Assembly (NCBI RefSeq): GCF_039654945.1
Contig: NW_027361696.1
Location: forward strand, 67,828,001-67,892,000
DNA from: Dendrobates tinctorius
Lineage: Eukaryota
DNA length: 64,000 bases
Direction of reading: 5' to 3'
Each line of letters starts with the position of its first letter. Position 1 is the stretch's first letter. The translations under genes were made by a program, and so were the position numbers. The notes under the pieces are model-generated. The model was not told the DNA's origin, did no database searches, and worked only from the letters and a program-made list of their open reading frames with translations. Below, piece after piece: positions 30,163 to 51,090 of the stretch.

Positions 30163-31533
30163 TTGGAGAAGTTCTTCCAACTGAGTTAAAGTGTTGCAGT
30201 AATTCATCTTTCCAGCCTGTATATACCTATCCTAAAGTCATATTGTAGATATCTGACATCAGAACCTGGTGTCATATCCTCAGCAAATCAGAGGGTTGGC
30301 TTTGTTTTTGTGCACAATGCTGAGCCATGTTCAGTGAGTCATTAAAGCAACATACAAAGACTACAGTACAGCCTCCGTGTACCATGAGATCATGATGTAT
30401 GTATGTAGGTGTATGGCAGATACGAGTCACTGAGACTTCTTGGCTCGGTGATGTAAGTCCTTGAAGAATAGTCTACTCTATGTATATTGCCATCCCTTAT
30501 TACACAGTGCCATGTGTGACACTGTACACAAAATACCATAAGGGATTGCCCAATAAATAACTAGAGAGGATGATACATAAGGGACGCCCCTTCCAGCAAT
30601 ATCCCCCATACTGGGCACTTTCCTAGGATAACGTATCTCACCCTTGCCTCCTTCTAGGTATATATGCCCCCCCATCCTGATATAAATGTCCCACAACCTG
30701 CTATAATGTGACCTGTTTTGTAATACATTAAAAACAAAATACTGTTCACCCTCCCCATGCGTCCTCTTCTACAGCCTTTGTGGGAGCTGGCAGTAGACTT
30801 TGCATCCCCATCATGGCACAAAGCATCACTGCCATGCGCCCCAGTCAGGTGCACGCCGACGTCAGCTTCCGGCCTCTGATCGGCCAGCAGTGTGTATTGC
30901 AATGCAGGGAGGTGACTGGTTCTCTGCAACACATTTCATCTGAATGTGCATCCGAGGACACATATCAAACCGAAGTAGTCGTCGCTGGTTACGGGCCCCT
31001 GTAAAGCTGCACGGCCGTAGCATTAGTGCATAAAAAAAAAAAAACAAGACTGAATCTGTGCTTGCGAAGGGTGTGTGTATCACCAACCAATCACGAAGCA
31101 TCTTTCATTTCACCAGAGCTGTTCAAAAGAAACTGAGCTGTGATTGGTTGCTATGAGCAACAGTTTTCCTTGCAACCAATCACTAAGCATCTCATTTCAC
31201 CAGAGCTGGTTAAATGAAGCCGAGCTGTGATTGGTTGCTATGAGCAAGTTTTCCCACTTGACAACACCTCAGCAGACACTAACATGGTGGGAGAAATCTA
31301 GCATCCCCAGGAACATAAGCTCCCAGCCATTGTCTGCCCCCCCAGAAAGGAGCACGGAGCACAGAGCACATAACAGAAATGAATCCCCCCTCCCGTGGAT
31401 CAATGGTATGCAAGTTAGGGCAAATCCACTCAGCGTTTTGGTACTGACCCCAGGCCTTTCTTAAAGGGATCTCCGGTATGGAAGGCAGGGTAAATCCATC
31501 CAGTGCTTTCGTTCTGACCCCATGTCTCGCTTA

Positions 31534-32436
31534 GGCTGAGTTCACACGTGGCTTTTTTTCGTGTTTCCGCGGCGGTTTTAACCGCGCAATTTTGCAGCGA
31601 AAATGCGAAAAATAAGCATTCCATGCATTCCTATGGGATTCCGCAATGCTGTACTAATGCTGCGGTTTTTACCGCGGCGGAATCGCTTCGCGGTAAAAAC
31701 CGCAGCATGCTCATTAATTTGCGGAATCGCGGCGATCCCCCACCCATAGGAATGCATTGTTCCGCTTACTTTCCGCATGTGGCTGTGCCCACCATGCGGA
31801 AAGTAAGCAGAACAATTGCGGATGGTACCCATGGTCCGGAGGAGAGGAGACTGTCCTCTGGGCTTTGGGTACAATATCCCTGTAAAAAATAGAATTTAAA
31901 ATAAAAAATATTGTTATTCTCACCCTCCGACGTCCCGCGCAGCCTTCCCGCCTCTCTCCACGCTCCCGTTCCCAGTAGTCCTTTGCGAAAATGCCCGCGA
32001 TGGCGTCCGTTCTCGCGGGATCGCGAAGTCTCGGTCATTCGTGCGACGTCATCGCGAATTACCGCGAGACGTCGCGATCCCGCGAGAACTGACGTCATCG
32101 CGGGCATTTTCGCAAAGGATTACTGGGAACGGATGCGCGGGACGTCGGAAGGTAAGAATAACACCATTTTTTATTTTTTTTTTACATTCTATCTTTTACT
32201 ATTGATGCCGCATAGGCGGCCTCAGTAGTAAAAAGTTGGTCACACTTTTTACCTGTCAATCAGTTCCCCAAGCGATGCTACAGATCGCTTGGAGAACGCT
32301 AGCATTTTGCAAGCTAATTAAGCTTGCAAAATGCTAGTTTTTCCGCGGGAATTTAAATTGCGATTTTCCCGCGGACTGGAATTCCGGAATTCTCGCGGTA
32401 ATTTCCGCGAGAGTTCTGGTACGTGTGCACTTAGCC
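31534..32436. mobile_element. Long MITE, TTA TSD, specific to unit A
   Basis: TTA|GGCTGAGTTCACACGT...ACGTGTGCACTTAGCC|TTA; empty site at 49520; near-identical inverted copy at 53616-54478. Confidence 0.9.
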
Positions 32437-33115
32437 TTAAAGGGATCCTCGGTATGGAAGTCAGGGCAATTGCCTTCAAATGCTCTGGTACTGACCCCAG
32501 GCTCTCTTAAAGGGATCTCCTGTACGGAAGTTAGGGCAAATCCCTCAGCGCTCCGATTCTGACCCCAGGGTTCTATTAAAGGGATATATAGCAGGGGTAT
32601 CTCAAAACCAATGTCAGATATTTAGAGGTAGCAAATTGGTATATCATGAACTATAAAACATAACCTTTAATGATTCCTTAAAAACCATGCATCAAATCTA
32701 GACAAACATGTGCCAAAGTGCAATTGTGTAGTGCTCTATTTAAAAACAAACCGTTATGTACTTTATGAGGTACCATATGGCCCTAGACATTATCGTATTT
32801 CTTGTCCAAATATTTACCTGGACTCTCCGACCATATGGGCCTTATACATATATATTCATATGCCAAAGGGCCTTTATGTCATCAGAATTATTACTTGTTA
32901 GACATATACTCAGCCCGTATACAAATAGCATAGCGTGTGTACAGCACCGGTCAAATGCATAAACATAAAATCACCTCATCAGCAATTTATATCTATTTAT
33001 GATACCACTGTAGAAACTGAAACCGCTGTACTTATCTTTGGACGCTTCTATAAATAGCGGATGATCAGGTAAGGTCCATCTGAAAACCCCAGAATCATGA
33101 CCCGATCTCCAGAAT

Positions 33116-33166
33116 TGTCACCCAACGCGTTTCATCAATGTCTGACTCATCAGGGGTATTGTGACA
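33116..33166 (-). ncRNA. Type I minimal hammerhead ribozyme in the 3' pseudo-LTR
   Basis: UGUCA-CAAU-ACCC CUGAUGA GUCA-GACAU-UGAU GAAA CGCG UU GGGU-GACA: full catalytic core, palindromic stem III, GUU cleavage triplet. Confidence 0.85.
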
Positions 33167-33984
33167 TCTTTTTCTGGCGCATAGCTCGCCCATTGTGAAA
33201 TAGCTGCCTTTTATAAATCGCGGCATACCGCGGCTTATTGCCGTTTCCGGTTGCCCCGTTCAGTACTTCCGGTTTGCGCATGACGCCGGCATCTGCTCAG
33301 GAAACTTGCCCCACTTCCTGGGTTTTCCTAAACAGGCGCCGCGCGTCATGTTGGGACAGGAACCGACCCTACCCTGCCCCACTTCCTGGGCGTAACCGGG
33401 CCTGTCGGTCTGCATATCAAAATATTGCGTGATTGGTCTACGCAGTCACCTGACCATCACGTACCATTAGGAGCCGCTCACTTTGTTTTACTACATCAAT
33501 CTAATAGTGCGGCTTCATTTACTCAATCACAAAATGTTGATTGCGTCCCCCTATCATTACTTATACGGGATCTGAATTATTAAGTCATTTTATGATTGCA
33601 TAGGCGTTATGAATCAGTACAAAACGCCAACACCCATATTATGGACATTGTCAAGGATTATCTTGTGAATAAAAACAAATTCTTTACACCCCATCGTAGG
33701 GAAAGAAACAGAAAAAAGAAAAAGAAAAATAATCAGGGTACCATCTGCAAATTATGTATAATGTGGAATTTGTTCAATTATTTTGTTGCATGCATAATAG
33801 GGGATACCACCAACCTCCATGTATCTGTAGGAATTATAGAAAGGGTGCCCACTAGATCTGGCCCTAAATGTCCCTAACTGACTGTTCCCTACCTCACGCG
33901 GAGGTTGGCACCCTAAATTCCTGCGCAATGGCGCCCCCACTCCTCGTCGGCTCTCCCTGAGCTAAAAAGCCCTATTAAAACTCC

Positions 33985-36378
33985 CTACAAGAAGGAAGAA
34001 AAGGATAGTGTCTCATTAAGTCCTTTGGGATATACAGATTGTAATGAGAAAATCCAATATGCTTCTCTTTGGAGTATACGTTTATCCCAATCACCTCCTC
34101 TTGGATTTTGGGGGACCTTTTCTATGCCCATGAAACTGACCGCCTTCACATCACCCTTATGTCTTTGATTGACATGAGTGGCTACCGGTGTATCACGTTT
34201 AAGAATTATATCTCTATGGTGTTCACCTACCCTCACCCTCAACTCCCTCTTTGTCTTGCCGATGTATTCAAGGCCACAACTACAGGTGATTTTATATACC
34301 ACTCCTATTGATCTGCAATTAATGAATTGACCAATACGATAGATCTTTCCTGTAACATTGCTCTGAAATTCTTTACTTTGGTGAATAGAGGTACAATATT
34401 TACAGCTACCACATCTGTAACAGCCTTTCGGCTGTGTACCTAACCATGTTGGGCTGTATGAGGTTCTCTGGGTATAATGACTGCGGACCAACCTATCCCT
34501 CAAGGAGCGGCCCCTCCTAAATGTAATTTGTGGATTATCCGAGATCAAGCCTCCAAGATCTTTGTCCATACATAGAATTGGCCAATGTCGGTTCATAATG
34601 GCTCTCAGCTCATTTGCCCCATTGGAAAAAGTGGTGATGAACCTTATGATATTGTCTTCATTGGTTTGCTGTTTGGGTATAAGTAGTTCTTTTCTTTCCT
34701 TCTCTACCGTAGATTTATAAGCCCCTTTAAGAATGTCATCTGGGTATCCTCGTTCATGAAAACGAGATCTAAGATCATCTGCTTGTCTCTTAAAGTCTCT
34801 CTGCTCAGTACAGTTCCTTTTCATGCGTAGGTACTGGCCTTTAGGAATACCTTTTTTCAGGGGGACTGGATGGCTGGATTCCCATCTTAGAAGGGAGTTC
34901 GTAGAGGTAGGTTTCCTGTATGTTTCTGTAACTATACGGCCATTTTCTCCCCTCTTAATGACTATGTCCAGAAAGGGTAGTCTATTCACACTAACCTCAC
35001 ATGTGAAGCTAAGACCAATATCATTTATATTAAGATCTTTCACAAAGGTTCTGAAACTGTTCTCATCACCTCTCCAAATAACAAATACATCGTCGATGTA
35101 GCGGAGCCATAGCACTATTTTGTCCTCCGCCACATCAACCTGCTCACCAAAAACGACATTTTCCTCCCACCAGCCCAGGAGCAAATTAGCGTACGATGGC
35201 GCACAGGGATTGCCCATCGCAGTGCCCCTGAGCTGATGGAAGAACCTGCCATCAAAAAGAAAAAAATTTTTTGTGAGACAGAATTCCAAGGCTTGCATAA
35301 CAAACAGGTTATGTCTCTTACATTGGACGCCCCTTGTCTTTAGGAAATAGTCCGCAGCCATCAGACCTTTATCATGGGGAATGGATGAGTACAAGGCTTC
35401 TACATCTATTGAACCCAATATCATATCGGTGTCCAATTCGATGTGGTCGAGTTTCAATAAAAGGTCGGTGGTATCCCTTGTATAGGAACTAAGTGATGTA
35501 ACAAATGGTCTTAGAATTTTGTCTACATATATACCCAGATTTTGGGTTAGACTTCCTATACCCGATATAATCGGTCGGCCTTTCAAGGGCGAAAGGCCTT
35601 TATGAATCTTAGGCAGAGCATAGAATGTTGCCACAGTCGGATGTTGTGGAATCAAAAATTCTTTCTCATTTTTATCAATGAGTTTTGCTTGGAGGGCCCC
35701 ATTCACCAACTTCTTAAGATCATTCAAGAAAGTGTTAGTGGGGTTATGTTCCATTCTTTCATATCCCATAGATCTATCTAACAATGAGTAGCACATGGTT
35801 TTATATTGTGCTACATCCATCAATACTATATTTCCCCCTTTATCTGCGGGCTTCACTATTATAGTATCATCTCTCTCTAGCTCCAGAAGCCCATCCATCT
35901 CAGACTTGGTAAGGTTATGGAATCGTCTTTTTTTCCCATTATCCAATTCCTTGATATCTCTAGATACCAGGTTGGCAAATATGTCAAGGGCCCCTATATC
36001 GTTGCTAATAGGTGGCATTTGTTTGCTCTTATTTTTTAATTGTGTGAATGGTCCCTCACCCAAATCGTTGGGATTCATATCCCCCAAATTGAACAAAAAT
36101 CTCACATCATTAAGTAGGTCTCCCTCTATACCCAATTCAGTGCAGCTTTTTTTATCCATATTAATGAAATGTTTTTTCCACTTAAGTTTACGAATGAAGA
36201 GCTGTAAATCCTTAATCGTTTCAAAACATTCAAGATCTGATGTTGGGACAAAAGACATCCCCTTACTGAGAACCGCCATCTGTTCTTTACTTAGGGATTT
36301 CGAGGAAAGGTTAATTATATGATTGTCTATACGGGGTTCCTGCCGTTGAACCTGTTTCTTAATGGGTAGCTTGTGTCT
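33985..36378 (-). CDS. Penelope ORF2: reverse transcriptase + Cys-rich linker + GIY-YIG endonuclease (first ATG 36279; frame open up to 36483)
   Basis: GRPIISG, SIDVEALYSSIP, QLRGTAMGNPCAPSYANL, WLRYIDDVF, LPFLD, YRKPT; CYRCGSCKYC; GVVYKITCSCGLEYIGKT..RVGEH..REAYWI..GLN; uninterrupted. Confidence 0.95.
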   Translation of the reverse strand, partial: RHKLPIKKQVQRQEPRIDNHIINLSSKSLSKEQMAVLSKGMSFVPTSDLECFETIKDLQLFIRKLKWKKHFINMDKKSCTELGIEGDLLNDVRFLFNLGDMNPNDLGEGPFTQLKNKSKQMPPISNDIGALDIFANLVSRDIKELDNGKKRRFHNLTKSEMDGLLELERDDTIIVKPADKGGNIVLMDVAQYKTMCYSLLDRSMGYERMEHNPTNTFLNDLKKLVNGALQAKLIDKNEKEFLIPQHPTVATFYALPKIHKGLSPLKGRPIISGIGSLTQNLGIYVDKILRPFVTSLSSYTRDTTDLLLKLDHIELDTDMILGSIDVEALYSSIPHDKGLMAADYFLKTRGVQCKRHNLFVMQALEFCLTKNFFLFDGRFFHQLRGTAMGNPCAPSYANLLLGWWEENVVFGEQVDVAEDKIVLWLRYIDDVFVIWRGDENSFRTFVKDLNINDIGLSFTCEVSVNRLPFLDIVIKRGENGRIVTETYRKPTSTNSLLRWESSHPVPLKKGIPKGQYLRMKRNCTEQRDFKRQADDLRSRFHERGYPDDILKGAYKSTVEKERKELLIPKQQTNEDNIIRFITTFSNGANELRAIMNRHWPILCMDKDLGGLISDNPQITFRRGRSLRDRLVRSHYTQRTSYSPTWLGTQPKGCYRCGSCKYCTSIHQSKEFQSNVTGKIYRIGQFINCRSIGVVYKITCSCGLEYIGKTKRELRVRVGEHHRDIILKRDTPVATHVNQRHKGDVKAVSFMGIEKVPQNPRGGDWDKRILQREAYWIFSLQSVYPKGLNETLSFSSFL

Positions 36379-37085
36379 AAAAAATGATCCCTCTGTGGGG
36401 AACCTCGACCAGATCCTCTCCCCGCACGTAAACTCCCCCTTCCCCTTACTCTCCCTCTTCCAGGTTTGTACCTCGTTTCTGAATCAGAAAACTCAGCCTC
36501 TGAAGATGATATATCTGTCTCCTGCGATCTGTTGGTTTTTCCGTAATACACTGAATATACTTTATTATCCCTGAATTCTTGTAAATCCCGGATAAAATAT
36601 TTATGCTTTCTTTCTTTCAGATGATATTGAAATTTTTCTATAATGTTTTGTAGACTAGATTCTTTCACCGTAAACTCGGCCTCTGCAGAAAATTTCTTCG
36701 TAACCTCTATCTGCTCTCTCAAACGTTCATTAATGTTATTTAACATACACTTCTCCTCCTCAAGGAGTATTTTCATAAGTTTCAATGAGCTATCCGTTGC
36801 TTCTTTCTCTAATTTGGCCAATAGTGTTGTATTCTTATATCTATAACCAAAGTTAATTGATATTCTAAGATGGCGGGGAACTATTCCTGCTTTTATATAA
36901 CTTTCCAAGCTCTGTACCTCCCACCACGAAGTGACCTGTTCTTTATAAACCTTGGTCAACTCTTTAAAAGCAGCACTGAAAGAGGGTATGTACTTTTTCT
37001 GTGTAAAGGTACCATCTGAAAATACATCTTTCGCTTCATTGATCCACTGATTGGTGTCTATTCCTGTAACAAGAAATCCTGCCAT
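36327..37085 (-). CDS. Penelope ORF1 (252 aa): coiled-coil protein with C-terminal RG/RGG-like tract
   Basis: Intact ORF between the 5' pseudo-LTR and ORF2; heptad-like LAKLEKEATDSSLKLMKILLEEEK..INERLREQI; GRGRVRGRGSLRAGRGSGRG. Confidence 0.8.
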   Translation of the reverse strand: MAGFLVTGIDTNQWINEAKDVFSDGTFTQKKYIPSFSAAFKELTKVYKEQVTSWWEVQSLESYIKAGIVPRHLRISINFGYRYKNTTLLAKLEKEATDSSLKLMKILLEEEKCMLNNINERLREQIEVTKKFSAEAEFTVKESSLQNIIEKFQYHLKERKHKYFIRDLQEFRDNKVYSVYYGKTNRSQETDISSSEAEFSDSETRYKPGRGRVRGRGSLRAGRGSGRGSPQRDHFLDTSYPLRNRFNGRNPV

Positions 37086-37632
37086 GTCCAACTATTACAA
37101 ATATATAGCAGGGGTATCTCAAAACCAATGTCAGATATTTAGAGGTAGCAAATTGGTATATCATGAACTATAAAACATAACCTTTAATGATTCCTTAAAA
37201 ACCATGCATCAAATCTAGACAAACATGTGCCAAAGTGCAATTGTGTAGTGCTCTATTTAAAAACAAACCGTTATGTACTTTATGAGGTACCATATGGCCC
37301 TAGACATTATCGTATTTCTTGTCCAAATATTTACCTGGACTCTCCGACCATATGGGCCTTATACATATATATTCATATGCCAAAGGGCCTTTATGTCATC
37401 AGAATTATTACTTGTTAGACATATACTCAGCCCGTATACAAATAGCATAGCGTGTGTACAGCACCGGTCAAATGCATAAACATAAAATCACCTCATCAGC
37501 AATTTATATCTATTTATGATACCACTGTAGAAACTGAAACCGCTGTACTTATCTTTGGACGCTTCTATAAATAGCGGATGATCAGGTAAGGTCCATCTGA
37601 AAACCCCAGAATCATGACCCGATCTCCAGAAT

Positions 37633-37683
37633 TGTCACCCAACGCGTTTCATCAATGTCTGACTCATCAGGGGTATTGTGACA
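37633..37683 (-). ncRNA. Type I minimal hammerhead ribozyme in the 5' pseudo-LTR
   Basis: Identical to 33116-33166, 4517 nt upstream on the element strand. Confidence 0.85.
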
Positions 37684-37725
37684 TCTTTTTCTGGCGCATA
37701 GCTCGCCCATTGTGAAATAGCTGCC

Positions 37726-37955
37726 TTTTATAAATCGCGGCATACCGCGGCTTATTGCCGTTTCCGGTTGCCCCGTTCAGTACTTCCGGTTTGCGCATGA
37801 CGCCGGCATCTGCTCAGGAAACTTGCCCCACTTCCTGGGTTTTCCTAAACAGGCGCCGCGCGTCATGTTGGGACAGGAACCGACCCTACCCTGCCCCACT
37901 TCCTGGGCGTAACCGGGCCTGTCGGTCTGCATATCAAAATATTGCGTGATTGGTC
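37726..37955 (-). promoter_or_regulatory. Putative Pol II promoter inside the Penelope pseudo-LTR (second copy at 33209-33438)
   Basis: TATAAAA on the - strand ~45 nt before the hammerhead, preceded by four ETS-like C(C/A)GGAA sites and a CCAAT in a CpG-rich patch. Confidence 0.55.
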
Positions 37956-39035
37956 TACGCAGTCACCTGACCATCACGTACCATTAGGAGCCGCTCACTT
38001 TGTTTTACTACATCAATCTAATAGTGCGGCTTCATTTACTCAATCACAAAATGTTGATTGCGTCCCCCTATCATTACTTATACGGGATCTGAATTATTAA
38101 GTCATTTTATGATTGCATAGGCGTTATGAATCAGTACAAAACGCCAACACCCATATTATGGACATTGTCAAGGATTATCTTGTGAATAAAAACAAATTCT
38201 TTACCCCATCGTAGGGAAAGAAACAGAAAAAAGAAAAAGAAAAATAATCAGGGTACCATCTGCAAATTATGTATAATGTGGAATTTGTTCAATTATTTTG
38301 TTGCATGCATTCTGGGGTTTTCAGATGGACCTTACCTGATCATCCGCTATTTATAGAAGCGTCCAAAGATAAGTACAGCGGTTTCAGTTTCTACAGTGGT
38401 ATCATAAATAGATATAAATTGCTGATGAGGTGATTTTATGTTTATGCATTTGACCGGTGCTGTACACACGCTATGCTATTTGTATACGGGCTGAGTATAT
38501 GTCTAACAAGTAATAATTCTGATGACATAAAGGCCCTTTGGCATATGAATATATATGTATAAGGCCCATATGGTCGGAGAGTCCAGGTAAATATTTGGAC
38601 AAGAAATACGATAATGTCTAGGGCCATATGGTACCTCATAAAGTACATAACGGTTTGTTTTTAAATAGAGCACTACACAATTGCACTTTGGCACATGTTT
38701 GTCTAGATTTGATGCATGGTTTTTAAGGAATCATTAAAGGTTATGTTTTATAGTTCTATTAAAGGGAACATTGGTATGCAAGTCAAGGCAAATCCATCCA
38801 GCGCTCTGGTTCAGATCCCAGGCTTTCTTAAAGGGATCCCTGGTATTGAAGTTAAGATAAATCCCTCAGCGCTCTGATTCTCAACCCAGGCTTCTATAAA
38901 AGGGATCATTGGTATGGAAGTCAGGGAAAATCCACTCAGCGCTCTGGTTCTGACGCCAGGCCTCTCTTAAAGAGATCCCCGGTATGGAAGTTAGGACCGT
39001 TCCACTCAGTGCTCTGGTTTTGACCCCAGGCTGAA

Positions 39036-39740
39036 GGGATGTGAAATATTAGGGGTAGCAGTCCGGTGGCTCTGGCTGACGAGATGATGCGGGATATTAG
39101 GGGTAGTAGTCCAGTGGCTCTGCCTGATGTGCAATATTAGGGGTAGGATTCCGGTGGCTCTGATGGGATTATGTGGGTTATTAGTCCAGTGGCTCTGGCT
39201 GAAGTGACGATGAGGGATATTATAGTGAATGTGGCTATGTAAAGTGGATGGGGCTCTACAAGCAGACACTGACTGGGTGGGAGAAATCTAGCATCCCTGG
39301 AAGCATAAGCTCCCAGCCATTGTCTGCCCCCCAAAACGGATGAGAGCACATGACAAATGAATCCCCCCTCCCGTGCCCATATACACACACCTCACACATC
39401 CTCTATCCCATGCAGGCACATCTTCCCTCTTAAATGGATAATTGGTATGGAAGTCAGAGCAAATCCAGCGCTTTTGTTTTGACCCCAGGCTTCTGTTTAA
39501 GGGATCCCTGGTATGGAAGTTAGGACCGTTCCACTCAGCTCAGTGGTTCTGACCCCAGAGTTCCATTAAAGGGATCTCCGGTATGGAATTCAGGGCAAAT
39601 CCATCCAGTGCTTTGGTTCTGACACCAGGCTGACGGGATGTGGGATATTCGTGGTAGTAGTCCAGTGGCTCTGGCTGATGTGGGATATTAGGGGTAGTAG
39701 TCCGGTAGCTCGGGCTGACGTGGGATATTATAGTGAATGC
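39036..39740. repeat. ~40-bp GGGATATTAGGGGTAGTAGTCCRGTGGCTCTGGCTGA satellite (39036-39232, 39633-39740) flanking a second 70-bp block (39435-39630)
   Basis: Direct inspection; paralogous blocks at 49937-50275, 50680-51010 and 51011-51090. Confidence 0.8.
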
Positions 39741-49384: not shown

Positions 49385-51090
49385 TGGATCATTGGTATGC
49401 AAGTTAGGGCAAATCCACTCAGCATTTTGGTACTGACCCCAGGCCTTTCTTAAAGGGATCTCCGGTATGGAAGGCAGGGCAAATCCATCCAGTGCTTTGG
49501 TTCTGACCCCATGTCTCGCTTAAAGGGATCCTCGGTATGGAAGTCAGGGCAATTGCCTTCAAATGCTCTGGTACTGACCCCAGGCTCTCTTAAAGGGATC
49601 TCCTGTACGGAAGTTAGGGCAAATCCCTCAGCGCTCCAATTCTGACCCCAGGGTTCTATTAAAGGGATCATTGGTATGCAAGCCAGGGAAAATCCATCCA
49701 GCGCTCTGGTTCGGATCCCAGGCTTTCTTAAAGGGATCCCCGGTATGGAAGTTAAGGTAAATCCCTCAGCACTGATTCTCAACCCAGGCTTCTATAAAAG
49801 GGATCATTGGTATGGAAGTCAGGGCAAATCCACTCAGCGCTCTGGTTCTGGCGCCAGGCCTCTCTTAATAAAGGGATCCCCGGTATGGAAGTTAGGACCG
49901 TTCCACTCAGCGCTCTGGTTCTGACCCCAGGCTGAAGGGATGATGTGAAATATTAGGGGTAGTAGTCCGGTGGCTCTGGCTGACGAGATGATGCGGGATA
50001 TTAGGGGGATAGTCCAGTGGCTCTGGCTGACGAGATTATGCGGGATATTAGGGGTAGTAGTCCAGTGGCTCTGGCTGATGTGCGATATTAGGGATAGTAT
50101 TCCGGTGGCTCTGATGGGATTATGTGGGATATTAGTAGTAGTCCGGTGGCTCTGGCTGACATGGGATATTAGGGGAGGGGAAGTATTCTGGTGGCTCTGG
50201 CTGACGGGATGATGTGGGATATTATGGGGTAGTAGTCCGGTCGCTCTGGCTGAAGGGACGATGGATATTACAGTGAATTTGGCTATGTAAAGTCGGTGGG
50301 GATCTACACTCTGCTATATATATATATAGATATAATTTTTTATAACTGTAGTTGCTTACTATGCCCAGGCAGCACCAGGCTCTTCAGCTAGTCTCTATAT
50401 ATAAAACTGAATTTATGTGTGTATCACCAACCAAATTACAAAGCATCTTTCATTTCACCAGAGCTGTTCAAAAAGAAGCTGAGCTGTGAGTGGTTGCCAT
50501 GAGCAAGTTTTCCCACTTAACACCTCAGCAGACACTGACCGGGTTGGAGAAACCTAAGCTCCCAGCCATTGTCTGCCCCCCCAAAACGGATGAGAGCACA
50601 TGACAAATGAATCCCCCCTTCCGTGCCCATGTACACCTCACACATCCTCTATCCCATGCAGGCACATCTTCCCTCTTAAATGGATAATTGGTATGGAAGT
50701 CAGAGAAAATCCAGCGCTTTTGTTTTGACCCCAGGCCTCTGTATAAGGGATCCCTGGTATGGAAGTTAGGACCATTCCACTCAGCGGTTCTGACCCCAGA
50801 GTTCTATTAAAGGGATCTCCGGTATGGAATTCAGGGCAAATCCATCCAGTGCTTTGGTTCTGACCCCAGGCTCTCTTAAAGGAATCTATGGTATGGAAGT
50901 TAGGGTAAATCCACTTTGTGCTCTGATTCTCACCCCAGGCTTCTATTGAAGGGATCATTGGTATGGAAGTCAGGACAAATTCACTCAGTGCTCTGGTTCT
51001 GACACCAGGCTGACGGAATGATGTGGGATATTAGTGGTAGTAGTCCAGTGGCTCTGGCTGACGGGATGATGTGGGGTATTATAGTGAATG
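49385..51090. repeat. 70-bp and ~40-bp satellite blocks of unit B
   Basis: TAAAGGGATC recurs at 49451, 49521, 49591 and 49660. Confidence 0.85.

Follow-up and report, generated by a model that had tools for sequence, protein, structure and literature searches.

Among the major classes of retrotransposons, Penelope-like elements (PLEs) are understood least, and most descriptions give them a single open reading frame (ORF). We analyzed a PLE on the minus strand of a 64,000-nt stretch from the frog Dendrobates tinctorius (assembly GCF_039654945.1, contig NW_027361696.1, positions 67,828,001 to 67,892,000 of the forward strand), referred to below as the window and numbered from its first letter. 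The element has a unit length of 4517 nt, and its coding part, framed by two pseudo-long terminal repeats (pseudo-LTRs), comprises two overlapping frames. ORF1 encodes 252 amino acids (aa), counted from an ATG at 37085 that sits 16 nt past the upstream pseudo-LTR; the ORF tool places the start two codons earlier, at a TTG. ORF2 carries the conserved N-terminal PLE motif N1, a reverse transcriptase (RT), a Cys-rich linker and, at its C terminus, a GIY-YIG nuclease (Table 1). Judged from its sequence, the copy is intact-looking, and it belongs to a high-copy, endonuclease-bearing PLE family.

ORF2 lies in the −1 frame relative to ORF1 and overlaps it by 157 nt. Within the overlap, ORF1 reads GAT CAT TTT TTA GAC, which places T_TTT_TTA exactly in the X_XXY_YYZ register of a slippery site. 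The first ATG of ORF2 is found at 36279, and the conserved PLE motif IINLSSKSLSKEQ stands 13 codons upstream of it, so that initiation at this ATG would truncate the motif. A slip on the heptamer is predicted to give a transframe fusion of 236 + 797 = 1033 aa with the junction ...DHF(L/F)RHKLPIK. A first-pass annotation of the window had described the −1 overlap bounded by the stop at 36486–36484, the register of the heptamer, the position of the motif ahead of the first ATG and products of 252 and about 1033 aa, all of which we recovered on re-deriving the coordinates, codon readings and lengths. Its interpretation, a gag-pol-style −1 ribosomal frameshift joining ORF1 to the RT–GIY-YIG frame, is supported by this geometry and by the lineage-wide conservation of the heptamer described below.

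Table 1 Features of the PLE and its surroundings, in window positions
Feature	Position	Strand	Basis
ORF1, 252 aa plus stop	36327–37085	−	ATG at 37085, TAG at 36329–36327
ORF1 parts: helical domain (residues about 38–174), acidic Ser-rich patch, RG/RGG-rich disordered tail, C-terminal FL..YPLRNR			alignments, AlphaFold2
ORF2 reading frame, 832 codons plus stop	33985–36483	−	open from just after stop 36486–36484
ORF1/ORF2 overlap, 157 nt, ORF2 in −1 frame	36327–36483	−	frame comparison
Slippery heptamer U_UUU_UUA in ORF1 register, then invariant G (36377)	36378–36384	−	sequence
Weak hairpin of 5 bp (GGUUC-N8-GAACC) lying 25 nt past the heptamer	36335–36352	−	not conserved
PLE N1 motif IINLSS (then ...LSKG) in ORF2	36318–36301	−	motif coordinates
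RT motif YIDD in ORF2	35100–35089	−	YxDD motif, a PLE criterion
Cys-rich Zn-finger-like linker CYRCGSCKYC in ORF2	34422–34393	−	between RT and GIY-YIG
GIY-YIG with two internal Cys, GVVYKITCSCGLEYIG	34302–34258	−	C-terminal nuclease of ORF2
Upstream pseudo-LTR	37101–38310	−	direct repeat of 32584–33795 (self-blastn, 1212 bp, 99.8% identity, offset 4517 nt)
Downstream pseudo-LTR	32584–33795	−	self-blastn
Inverted partial pseudo-LTR copy, adjoining the 5′ pseudo-LTR	38304–38756	+	self-blastn, 453 bp, 99.8% identity, inverted
Hammerhead-like CUGAUGAG...GAAAC motif in upstream pseudo-LTR	about 37672–37640	−	read from sequence

A search with ORF1 returned five stand-alone ORF1 proteins at 46–53% identity, and a profile search of 1.84 billion representatives yielded 2028 clusters with the ORF1 domain. 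The best profile matches were mostly stand-alone proteins of 240–360 aa, many of them ending in an FL..Y.LR tail. Relatives with DNA available for comparison were L002–L004, L005, L006, L007, L008, L009, L011 and L013 (Bufo gargarizans, GCA_014858855.1). With L002–L004 listed jointly, these make up eight further two-ORF lineages and, together with the fused relative L001, nine further heptamer-bearing ones. The ORF1s of the eight two-ORF lineages are 28–53% identical to that of the window; in all eight, the octamer TTTTTTAG is in register at the homologous Phe-Leu codons and the RT frame (FFR...(V/I)INLS) lies in −1 relative to ORF1. The conservation check proposed in the first-pass annotation thus came out positive, with the heptamer in register in nine other diverged lineages and ORF2 in −1 in 8/9; including the window copy, the X_XXY_YYZ register is kept in 10/10 lineages. 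In other respects, the L006 and L013 copies are degenerate and contain additional frame breaks downstream. A lineage-specific feature of L002 is that A_AAA_AAA, another slippery heptamer in register, occurs right at the start of its overlap (L002:723), 90 nt upstream of TTTTTTA.

This conservation exceeds the coding need, as indicated by both alignment and synonymous-site statistics. When the lineages are anchored on the heptamer, their flanks are unalignable, and the octamer is the sole invariant stretch (MAFFT, RNAalifold). The conserved ORF1 motifs SWWEVQSL, IVPRGLRI and KERKH write Ser, Leu, Arg, Val and Pro in many synonymous codons and, therefore, synonymous sites are saturated. At the site, whichever of H, S, V, D, R or P the codon before Phe-Leu specifies, its last letter is T, while Phe is always TTT and Leu always TTA. 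Given a conserved Phe-Leu and the codon usage of the families, the chance of finding the site is ~0.028 per lineage and 0.028^8 = 4e-13 overall, a value that treats the eight lineages as independent; L013 adds a ninth.

Stops in both frames confine the frame change to a 52-nt interval common to the lineages: the latest opening of the −1 frame is 6 nt ahead of the heptamer (L005), and the earliest ORF1 stop comes 39 nt behind it (L002). Within this interval, no letters other than the heptamer and the following G are conserved. Past the heptamer, both frames are conserved as protein. The 0 frame retains FL[DEG]..Y.LR[NS][RK] followed by a stop, with F235 and L236 invariant and R243 at least 90% conserved across 17 ORF1s. 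The codons of Y.LR vary synonymously (Leu as TTA, CTA, CTG, TTG or CTC; Arg as AGA, AGG, CGA, CGC or CGG). Because such synonymous 0-frame changes alter the −1 peptide, the ORF1 tail is a selected protein sequence, and its conservation as protein indicates that ORF1 really terminates after the heptamer. The −1 frame, in turn, has to be read as well, given that it contains the conserved N1 motif 22–50 codons downstream.

Reading of the −1 frame could also be achieved by independent translation of ORF2, through reinitiation, leaky scanning or internal entry at AUG 36279 or at a non-AUG codon, without fusion to ORF1. LINE-1 makes its ORF2 without a frameshift, and an ATG is present at 36279 in the window copy and at the same place in L005. 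This ATG falls inside the N1 motif, however, and a start there would lose the conserved IINLSSKSL... sequence. No ORF2 ATG is conserved: L002, L008 and L009 have no Met near N1, for more than 60 codons around. Independent translation also leaves the long −1 overlap and the conserved heptamer unexplained. ATG initiation of ORF2 is therefore unlikely, and we regard this route as a whole as highly improbable. Splicing was considered as well and rejected, the sole GT..AG pair across the ORF1 stop of the window copy removing 25 nt, which is too short, in the wrong frame and not conserved.

To place the two-ORF arrangement among relatives, 32 ORF1 domains were put into a quick maximum-likelihood tree. 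All heptamer-bearing lineages and FL-tail ORF1s fell into one clade on a long stem (SH-aLRT 99). Families outside this clade carry the homologous domain as the N-terminus of one long ORF. For example, L012 from Ranitomeya imitator has a continuous 1034-aa ORF in genomic DNA, reads ATC TTG GGA at the equivalent place and contains no in-register slippery site in its linker. Stand-alone ORF1s lacking the FL tail (‘noFL’) group with the single-ORF families and are probably broken copies; L010, which stands for them, is an internally deleted copy and uninformative. A separate ORF1 with heptamer looks like a derived trait of one clade, and the putative frameshift arrangement is, on this tree, a clade trait and not peculiar to the window copy.

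RNA structure downstream of the heptamer was assessed in several ways. In the window copy, the 100 nt after the heptamer have a minimum free energy of −5.7 kcal/mol (z = +1.38 versus shuffles, that is, weaker than shuffled), and z values in the other lineages lie between −0.8 and +1.4. Enforced hairpins with spacers of 3–12 nt were unremarkable in the window copy (−2.9 kcal/mol), and the stronger ones in L006 and L008 are not homologous. RNAalifold on eight lineages predicted no consensus pair downstream. The first-pass annotation had cautioned that the only hairpin it saw lay 25 nt from the heptamer, and this caution was warranted: the GGUUC/GAACC hairpin is probably irrelevant, and no adequate stimulator was detected here or as a conserved structure. 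Because no cis RNA stimulator was found, slipping would be low-level on the heptamer alone or aided in trans.

Given the geometry, the nucleotide conservation and the use of both frames, a programmed −1 ribosomal frameshift at U_UUU_UUA (36384–36378) is the explanation we consider likely, with considerable confidence. Most ribosomes would read ORF1 to its stop, producing the 252-aa helical protein with its RG-rich disordered tail as a presumed RNA-binding or packaging partner. A minority would slip back by 1 nt on U_UUU_UUA and go on in the −1 frame, giving the ~1033-aa ORF1–RT–GIY-YIG fusion (...DHF(L/F)RHKLPIK...), which would be the sole route to an RT with the conserved N-terminal motif. 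We infer that the ribosome, and not the polymerase, slips, and our statements on slip efficiency, ORF1:fusion ratio and the role of ORF1 are of the same kind.

Several points weigh against a programmed frameshift. No run recorded as RNA contains the element. No stem-loop or pseudoknot was found 5–9 nt downstream of the heptamer, either in this copy or conserved, in a pseudoknot search that was not exhaustive. The independence of the lineages is judged from sequence divergence and not from the host species of the Logan contigs. Furthermore, a fused form can exist inside the clade because L001 (Ranitomeya imitator, GCA_958301615.1, L001:29557–32721) reads through: it is a single 1064-aa ORF that keeps TCT TTT TTA GAG (TTTTTTA at 30294) but runs to INLSS/RT in frame 0, with its −1 frame closing after 35 codons. 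The premise of the first-pass annotation that a single ORF is the classical state needs qualifying: more distant frog families such as L012 have the N-terminal domain fused in one ORF and lack any heptamer, and L001 is fused within the clade yet keeps it. L001 retains T6A, changes frame further downstream and sits inside the two-ORF clade; an indel downstream of the heptamer seems to have fused its ORFs secondarily.

A last point of this kind is that the conserved site includes a homopolymer, T6 in most lineages and T7 in L005. Such a run would also suit transcriptional slippage, in which RNA polymerase II, or the element’s RT when copying, adds a U in the U6 run and generates a minority of in-frame mRNAs. 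One extra U would give ...HFFRH... in frame, and the lack of a detected ribosome-pausing structure is compatible with this route. Slippage needs the run only, however, yet the final A is invariant and the register is kept in 10/10 lineages. TTA constitutes 0.49 of TTA + TTG elsewhere, while at the site TTA is used and TTG never, an exclusivity that is more in keeping with a slip site for ribosomes than with a plain run of U. Six U are, moreover, short for polymerase II slippage, and same-species contigs show no run-length variants, though contigs drop rare variants. Polymerase slippage is, in our assessment, quite improbable.

A further explanation is that the two-ORF state is an artefact of dead copies, with a functional master that is a single ORF and recurrent 1-nt deletions in the T run. 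Homopolymers are indel hotspots, and L001 as well as the more distant families L012 and P0044 are single ORFs. To examine copies in the same species, contigs (Logan) of four D. tinctorius runs were placed on 33800–37300; these are contigs and not reads, and their low-support rows are partly unlisted. The family is high-copy: in a 2-Gb run, the ORFs have a word depth of about 200–500. No indel between 36300 and 36500 is among those tabulated for these contigs, and no length variants of the T run appeared in them, subject to the same loss of rare variants. Two records from separate studies agree: X8 record 24 spans 35754–36523 with 0 gaps and 26 mismatches, and X5 record 16 spans 36207–36430 with 0 gaps and 3 mismatches. 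The case that the first-pass annotation had named as fatal to its reading, a continuous family ORF with a 1-nt indel in the T run of this copy, fails against these contigs, which show no indel across the overlap. Other evidence also opposes the artefact. The arrangement is identical in 9/9 two-ORF lineages, the 0-frame tail is under protein-level selection, which is unexpected for a never-translated frame, and L001, nested in the two-ORF clade, is not fused via a longer T run. We consider a dead-copy origin very improbable and retain the programmed frameshift as the favored explanation.

The protein that most ribosomes would make was modeled with AlphaFold2 from an 11-sequence alignment. Three long helices (residues 38–68, 88–132 and 140–174) were predicted with pLDDT >90, followed from residue 182 by a disordered tail (pLDDT <50) within which the acidic Ser-rich patch and the RG/RGG repeats are found. 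Foldseek of the model against the PDB found no match better than E = 0.9, and an ESM Atlas feature search gave unnamed clusters only, with scores <0.9. Of the earlier description as a ‘coiled-coil/RGG ORF1’, the RG/RGG tail and the long, confidently predicted helices hold, with the coiled coil itself supported no further than these helices; a coiled-coil, RNA-binding ORF1 is plausible from the model. The RG-rich tail, GRGRVRGRGSLRAGRGSGRGS, lies wholly inside the overlap and upstream of the heptamer (36385–36470, minus strand). Here the −1 frame stays open over 99 nt, without conservation among lineages.

For ORF2, we obtained 1433 homologous matches, abundant in amphibians. The best were only 49–65% identical and carry PF00078, PF26215, PF28514 and PF01541. 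A local Pfam scan gave no match for ORF2 of this copy and only noise for ORF1; in the relative L003, it detected RVT_1 (E = 3e-5) and PF01541 (E = 6e-4). A Cys-rich linker (CX2-5CxxC) between RT and endonuclease (EN) sets Neptune/Nematis apart from Penelope/Poseidon (PMC8557442, PMC3846280). Because such a linker is present, with similar motifs in L003, P0072 and P0044, the element is classified as an endonuclease-bearing (EN+) PLE of the Neptune type, an assignment by motifs and architecture rather than by phylogeny with named Neptune references.

Outside the coding part, the inverted partial copy beside the 5′ pseudo-LTR is that of a typical complex PLE insertion. A hammerhead-like core, CCCCUGAUGAGUCAGACAUUGAUGAAACGCG, is present within the upstream pseudo-LTR (37640–37672, minus strand) and has a twin in the other pseudo-LTR ~4517 nt downstream. 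An Rfam scan of 28–42 kb reported no hammerhead at E ≤ 1 and no frameshift element, with only sub-threshold chance matches. Just outside both element ends stands a tandem repeat of ~70–85 nt, which recurs 11–12 kb away in copies that are 78–99% alike. Tandem-repeat stretches occupy 32436–32585, 38822–39629, 49395–50955 and 31406–31522 of the window, and the PLE seems to have integrated into a satellite array. Additionally, two ORFs that mirror each other on the two strands, along with several Rfam matches below threshold to microRNAs and RUF6, point to a long inverted or hairpin-forming repeat in the interval 31756–32228, possibly a miniature inverted-repeat transposable element.

The heptamer U_UUU_UUA is the gag-pol slippery sequence of HIV-1, in which a stable stem-loop follows a short spacer downstream. 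In both systems, the identical heptamer is followed by G(G/A), encodes ..FL(G).. in the 0 frame and ..FFR.. in −1, and links an upstream structural nucleic-acid-binding ORF (putative here) to a downstream RT in −1. Unlike HIV-1 with its stem-loop, the frog element has no such structure found or conserved, and it is a PLE with a GIY-YIG nuclease and not a retrovirus. The resemblance is clearly convergent. A more far-reaching idea, which we rate as unlikely though less so than the rival explanations above, is that this vertebrate EN+ PLE clade, with ORF1s ~28% identical, convergently evolved an HIV-type UUUUUUAG(R) site that works without cis RNA structure. The bare heptamer may then keep the RT:ORF1 ratio very low; alternatively, a trans factor bound just downstream may stimulate slipping and thereby regulate this ratio, with the element’s own RG-rich ORF1 protein as the obvious candidate. 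If true, a trans-stimulated slip would be the first in a cellular retrotransposon.

A full-text literature search that paired ‘Penelope-like’ with slippery or ribosomal frameshifting gave no match, within a reach that excluded Arkhipova 2006, Gladyshev & Arkhipova 2007 and Arkhipova et al. 2017. The legend of Fig. 1 in Craig et al. 2021 (PMC8557442) mentions that in some PLEs an ORF1 is separable by a frameshift with a pseudoknot. As far as that legend describes them, these PLEs resemble the frog element in having a Penelope-like RT after a separate helical ORF1 joined by a frameshift; the frog element differs from them in its GIY-YIG and Cys-rich linker, its anuran host and the absence of a detected pseudoknot. 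A frameshift-split ORF1 has, thus, already been noted for some PLEs, and what is added here is a vertebrate clade of EN+ PLEs of the Neptune type in which an HIV-type heptamer is conserved and no pseudoknot was found. The PLEs of the legend are probably the endonuclease-less Athena/Terminon elements of rotifers. In contrast to the Athena/Terminon type, the frog element has a GIY-YIG and sits in an interstitial satellite/gene context, not a telomeric one.

With canonical EN+ PLEs (Penelope/Poseidon, Neptune), the frog element shares pseudo-LTRs, a partial inverted copy, N1, RT, a Cys-rich linker and a GIY-YIG with internal Cys. Canonical single-ORF organization is also approached through the ORF1-homologous N-terminal domain inside the single ORF of distant frog families (L012), but in the frog element this domain is separate and has its own conserved tail, with the RT in −1. 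LINE-1 is comparable as a two-ORF non-LTR-type retroelement with a helical, basic and presumably RNA-binding ORF1. Its ORF1 gives no sequence or fold match, however (Foldseek best E = 0.9), and L1 ORFs are non-overlapping, with ORF2 made without frameshifting.

The two-ORF organization has consequences for annotation, as pipelines split or mis-splice these PLEs. An example comes from Bufo gargarizans (L013:4001–7071), where the NCBI model ‘coagulation factor XIII B chain-like, partial’ (P0127) begins with ~214 residues that are the ORF1 of a degenerate PLE copy. The model joins this ORF1 to Sushi-domain sequence over a span of 82 kb and is an annotation chimera; the R. imitator model P0041 has been pieced together in a similar way across 39 kb. 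The octamer TTTTTTAG between ...RG-rich...FL and INLS offers a simple diagnostic for curating the clade. As a natural, conserved slippery heptamer without a recognizable stimulator, the site would help to define the minimal needs of −1 frameshifting in vertebrate cells. Should the frameshift prove real, Gag-Pol-style expression would operate in a large, active-looking clade of amphibian PLEs, and both a defined ORF1 protein and a fixed stoichiometry could be studied there.

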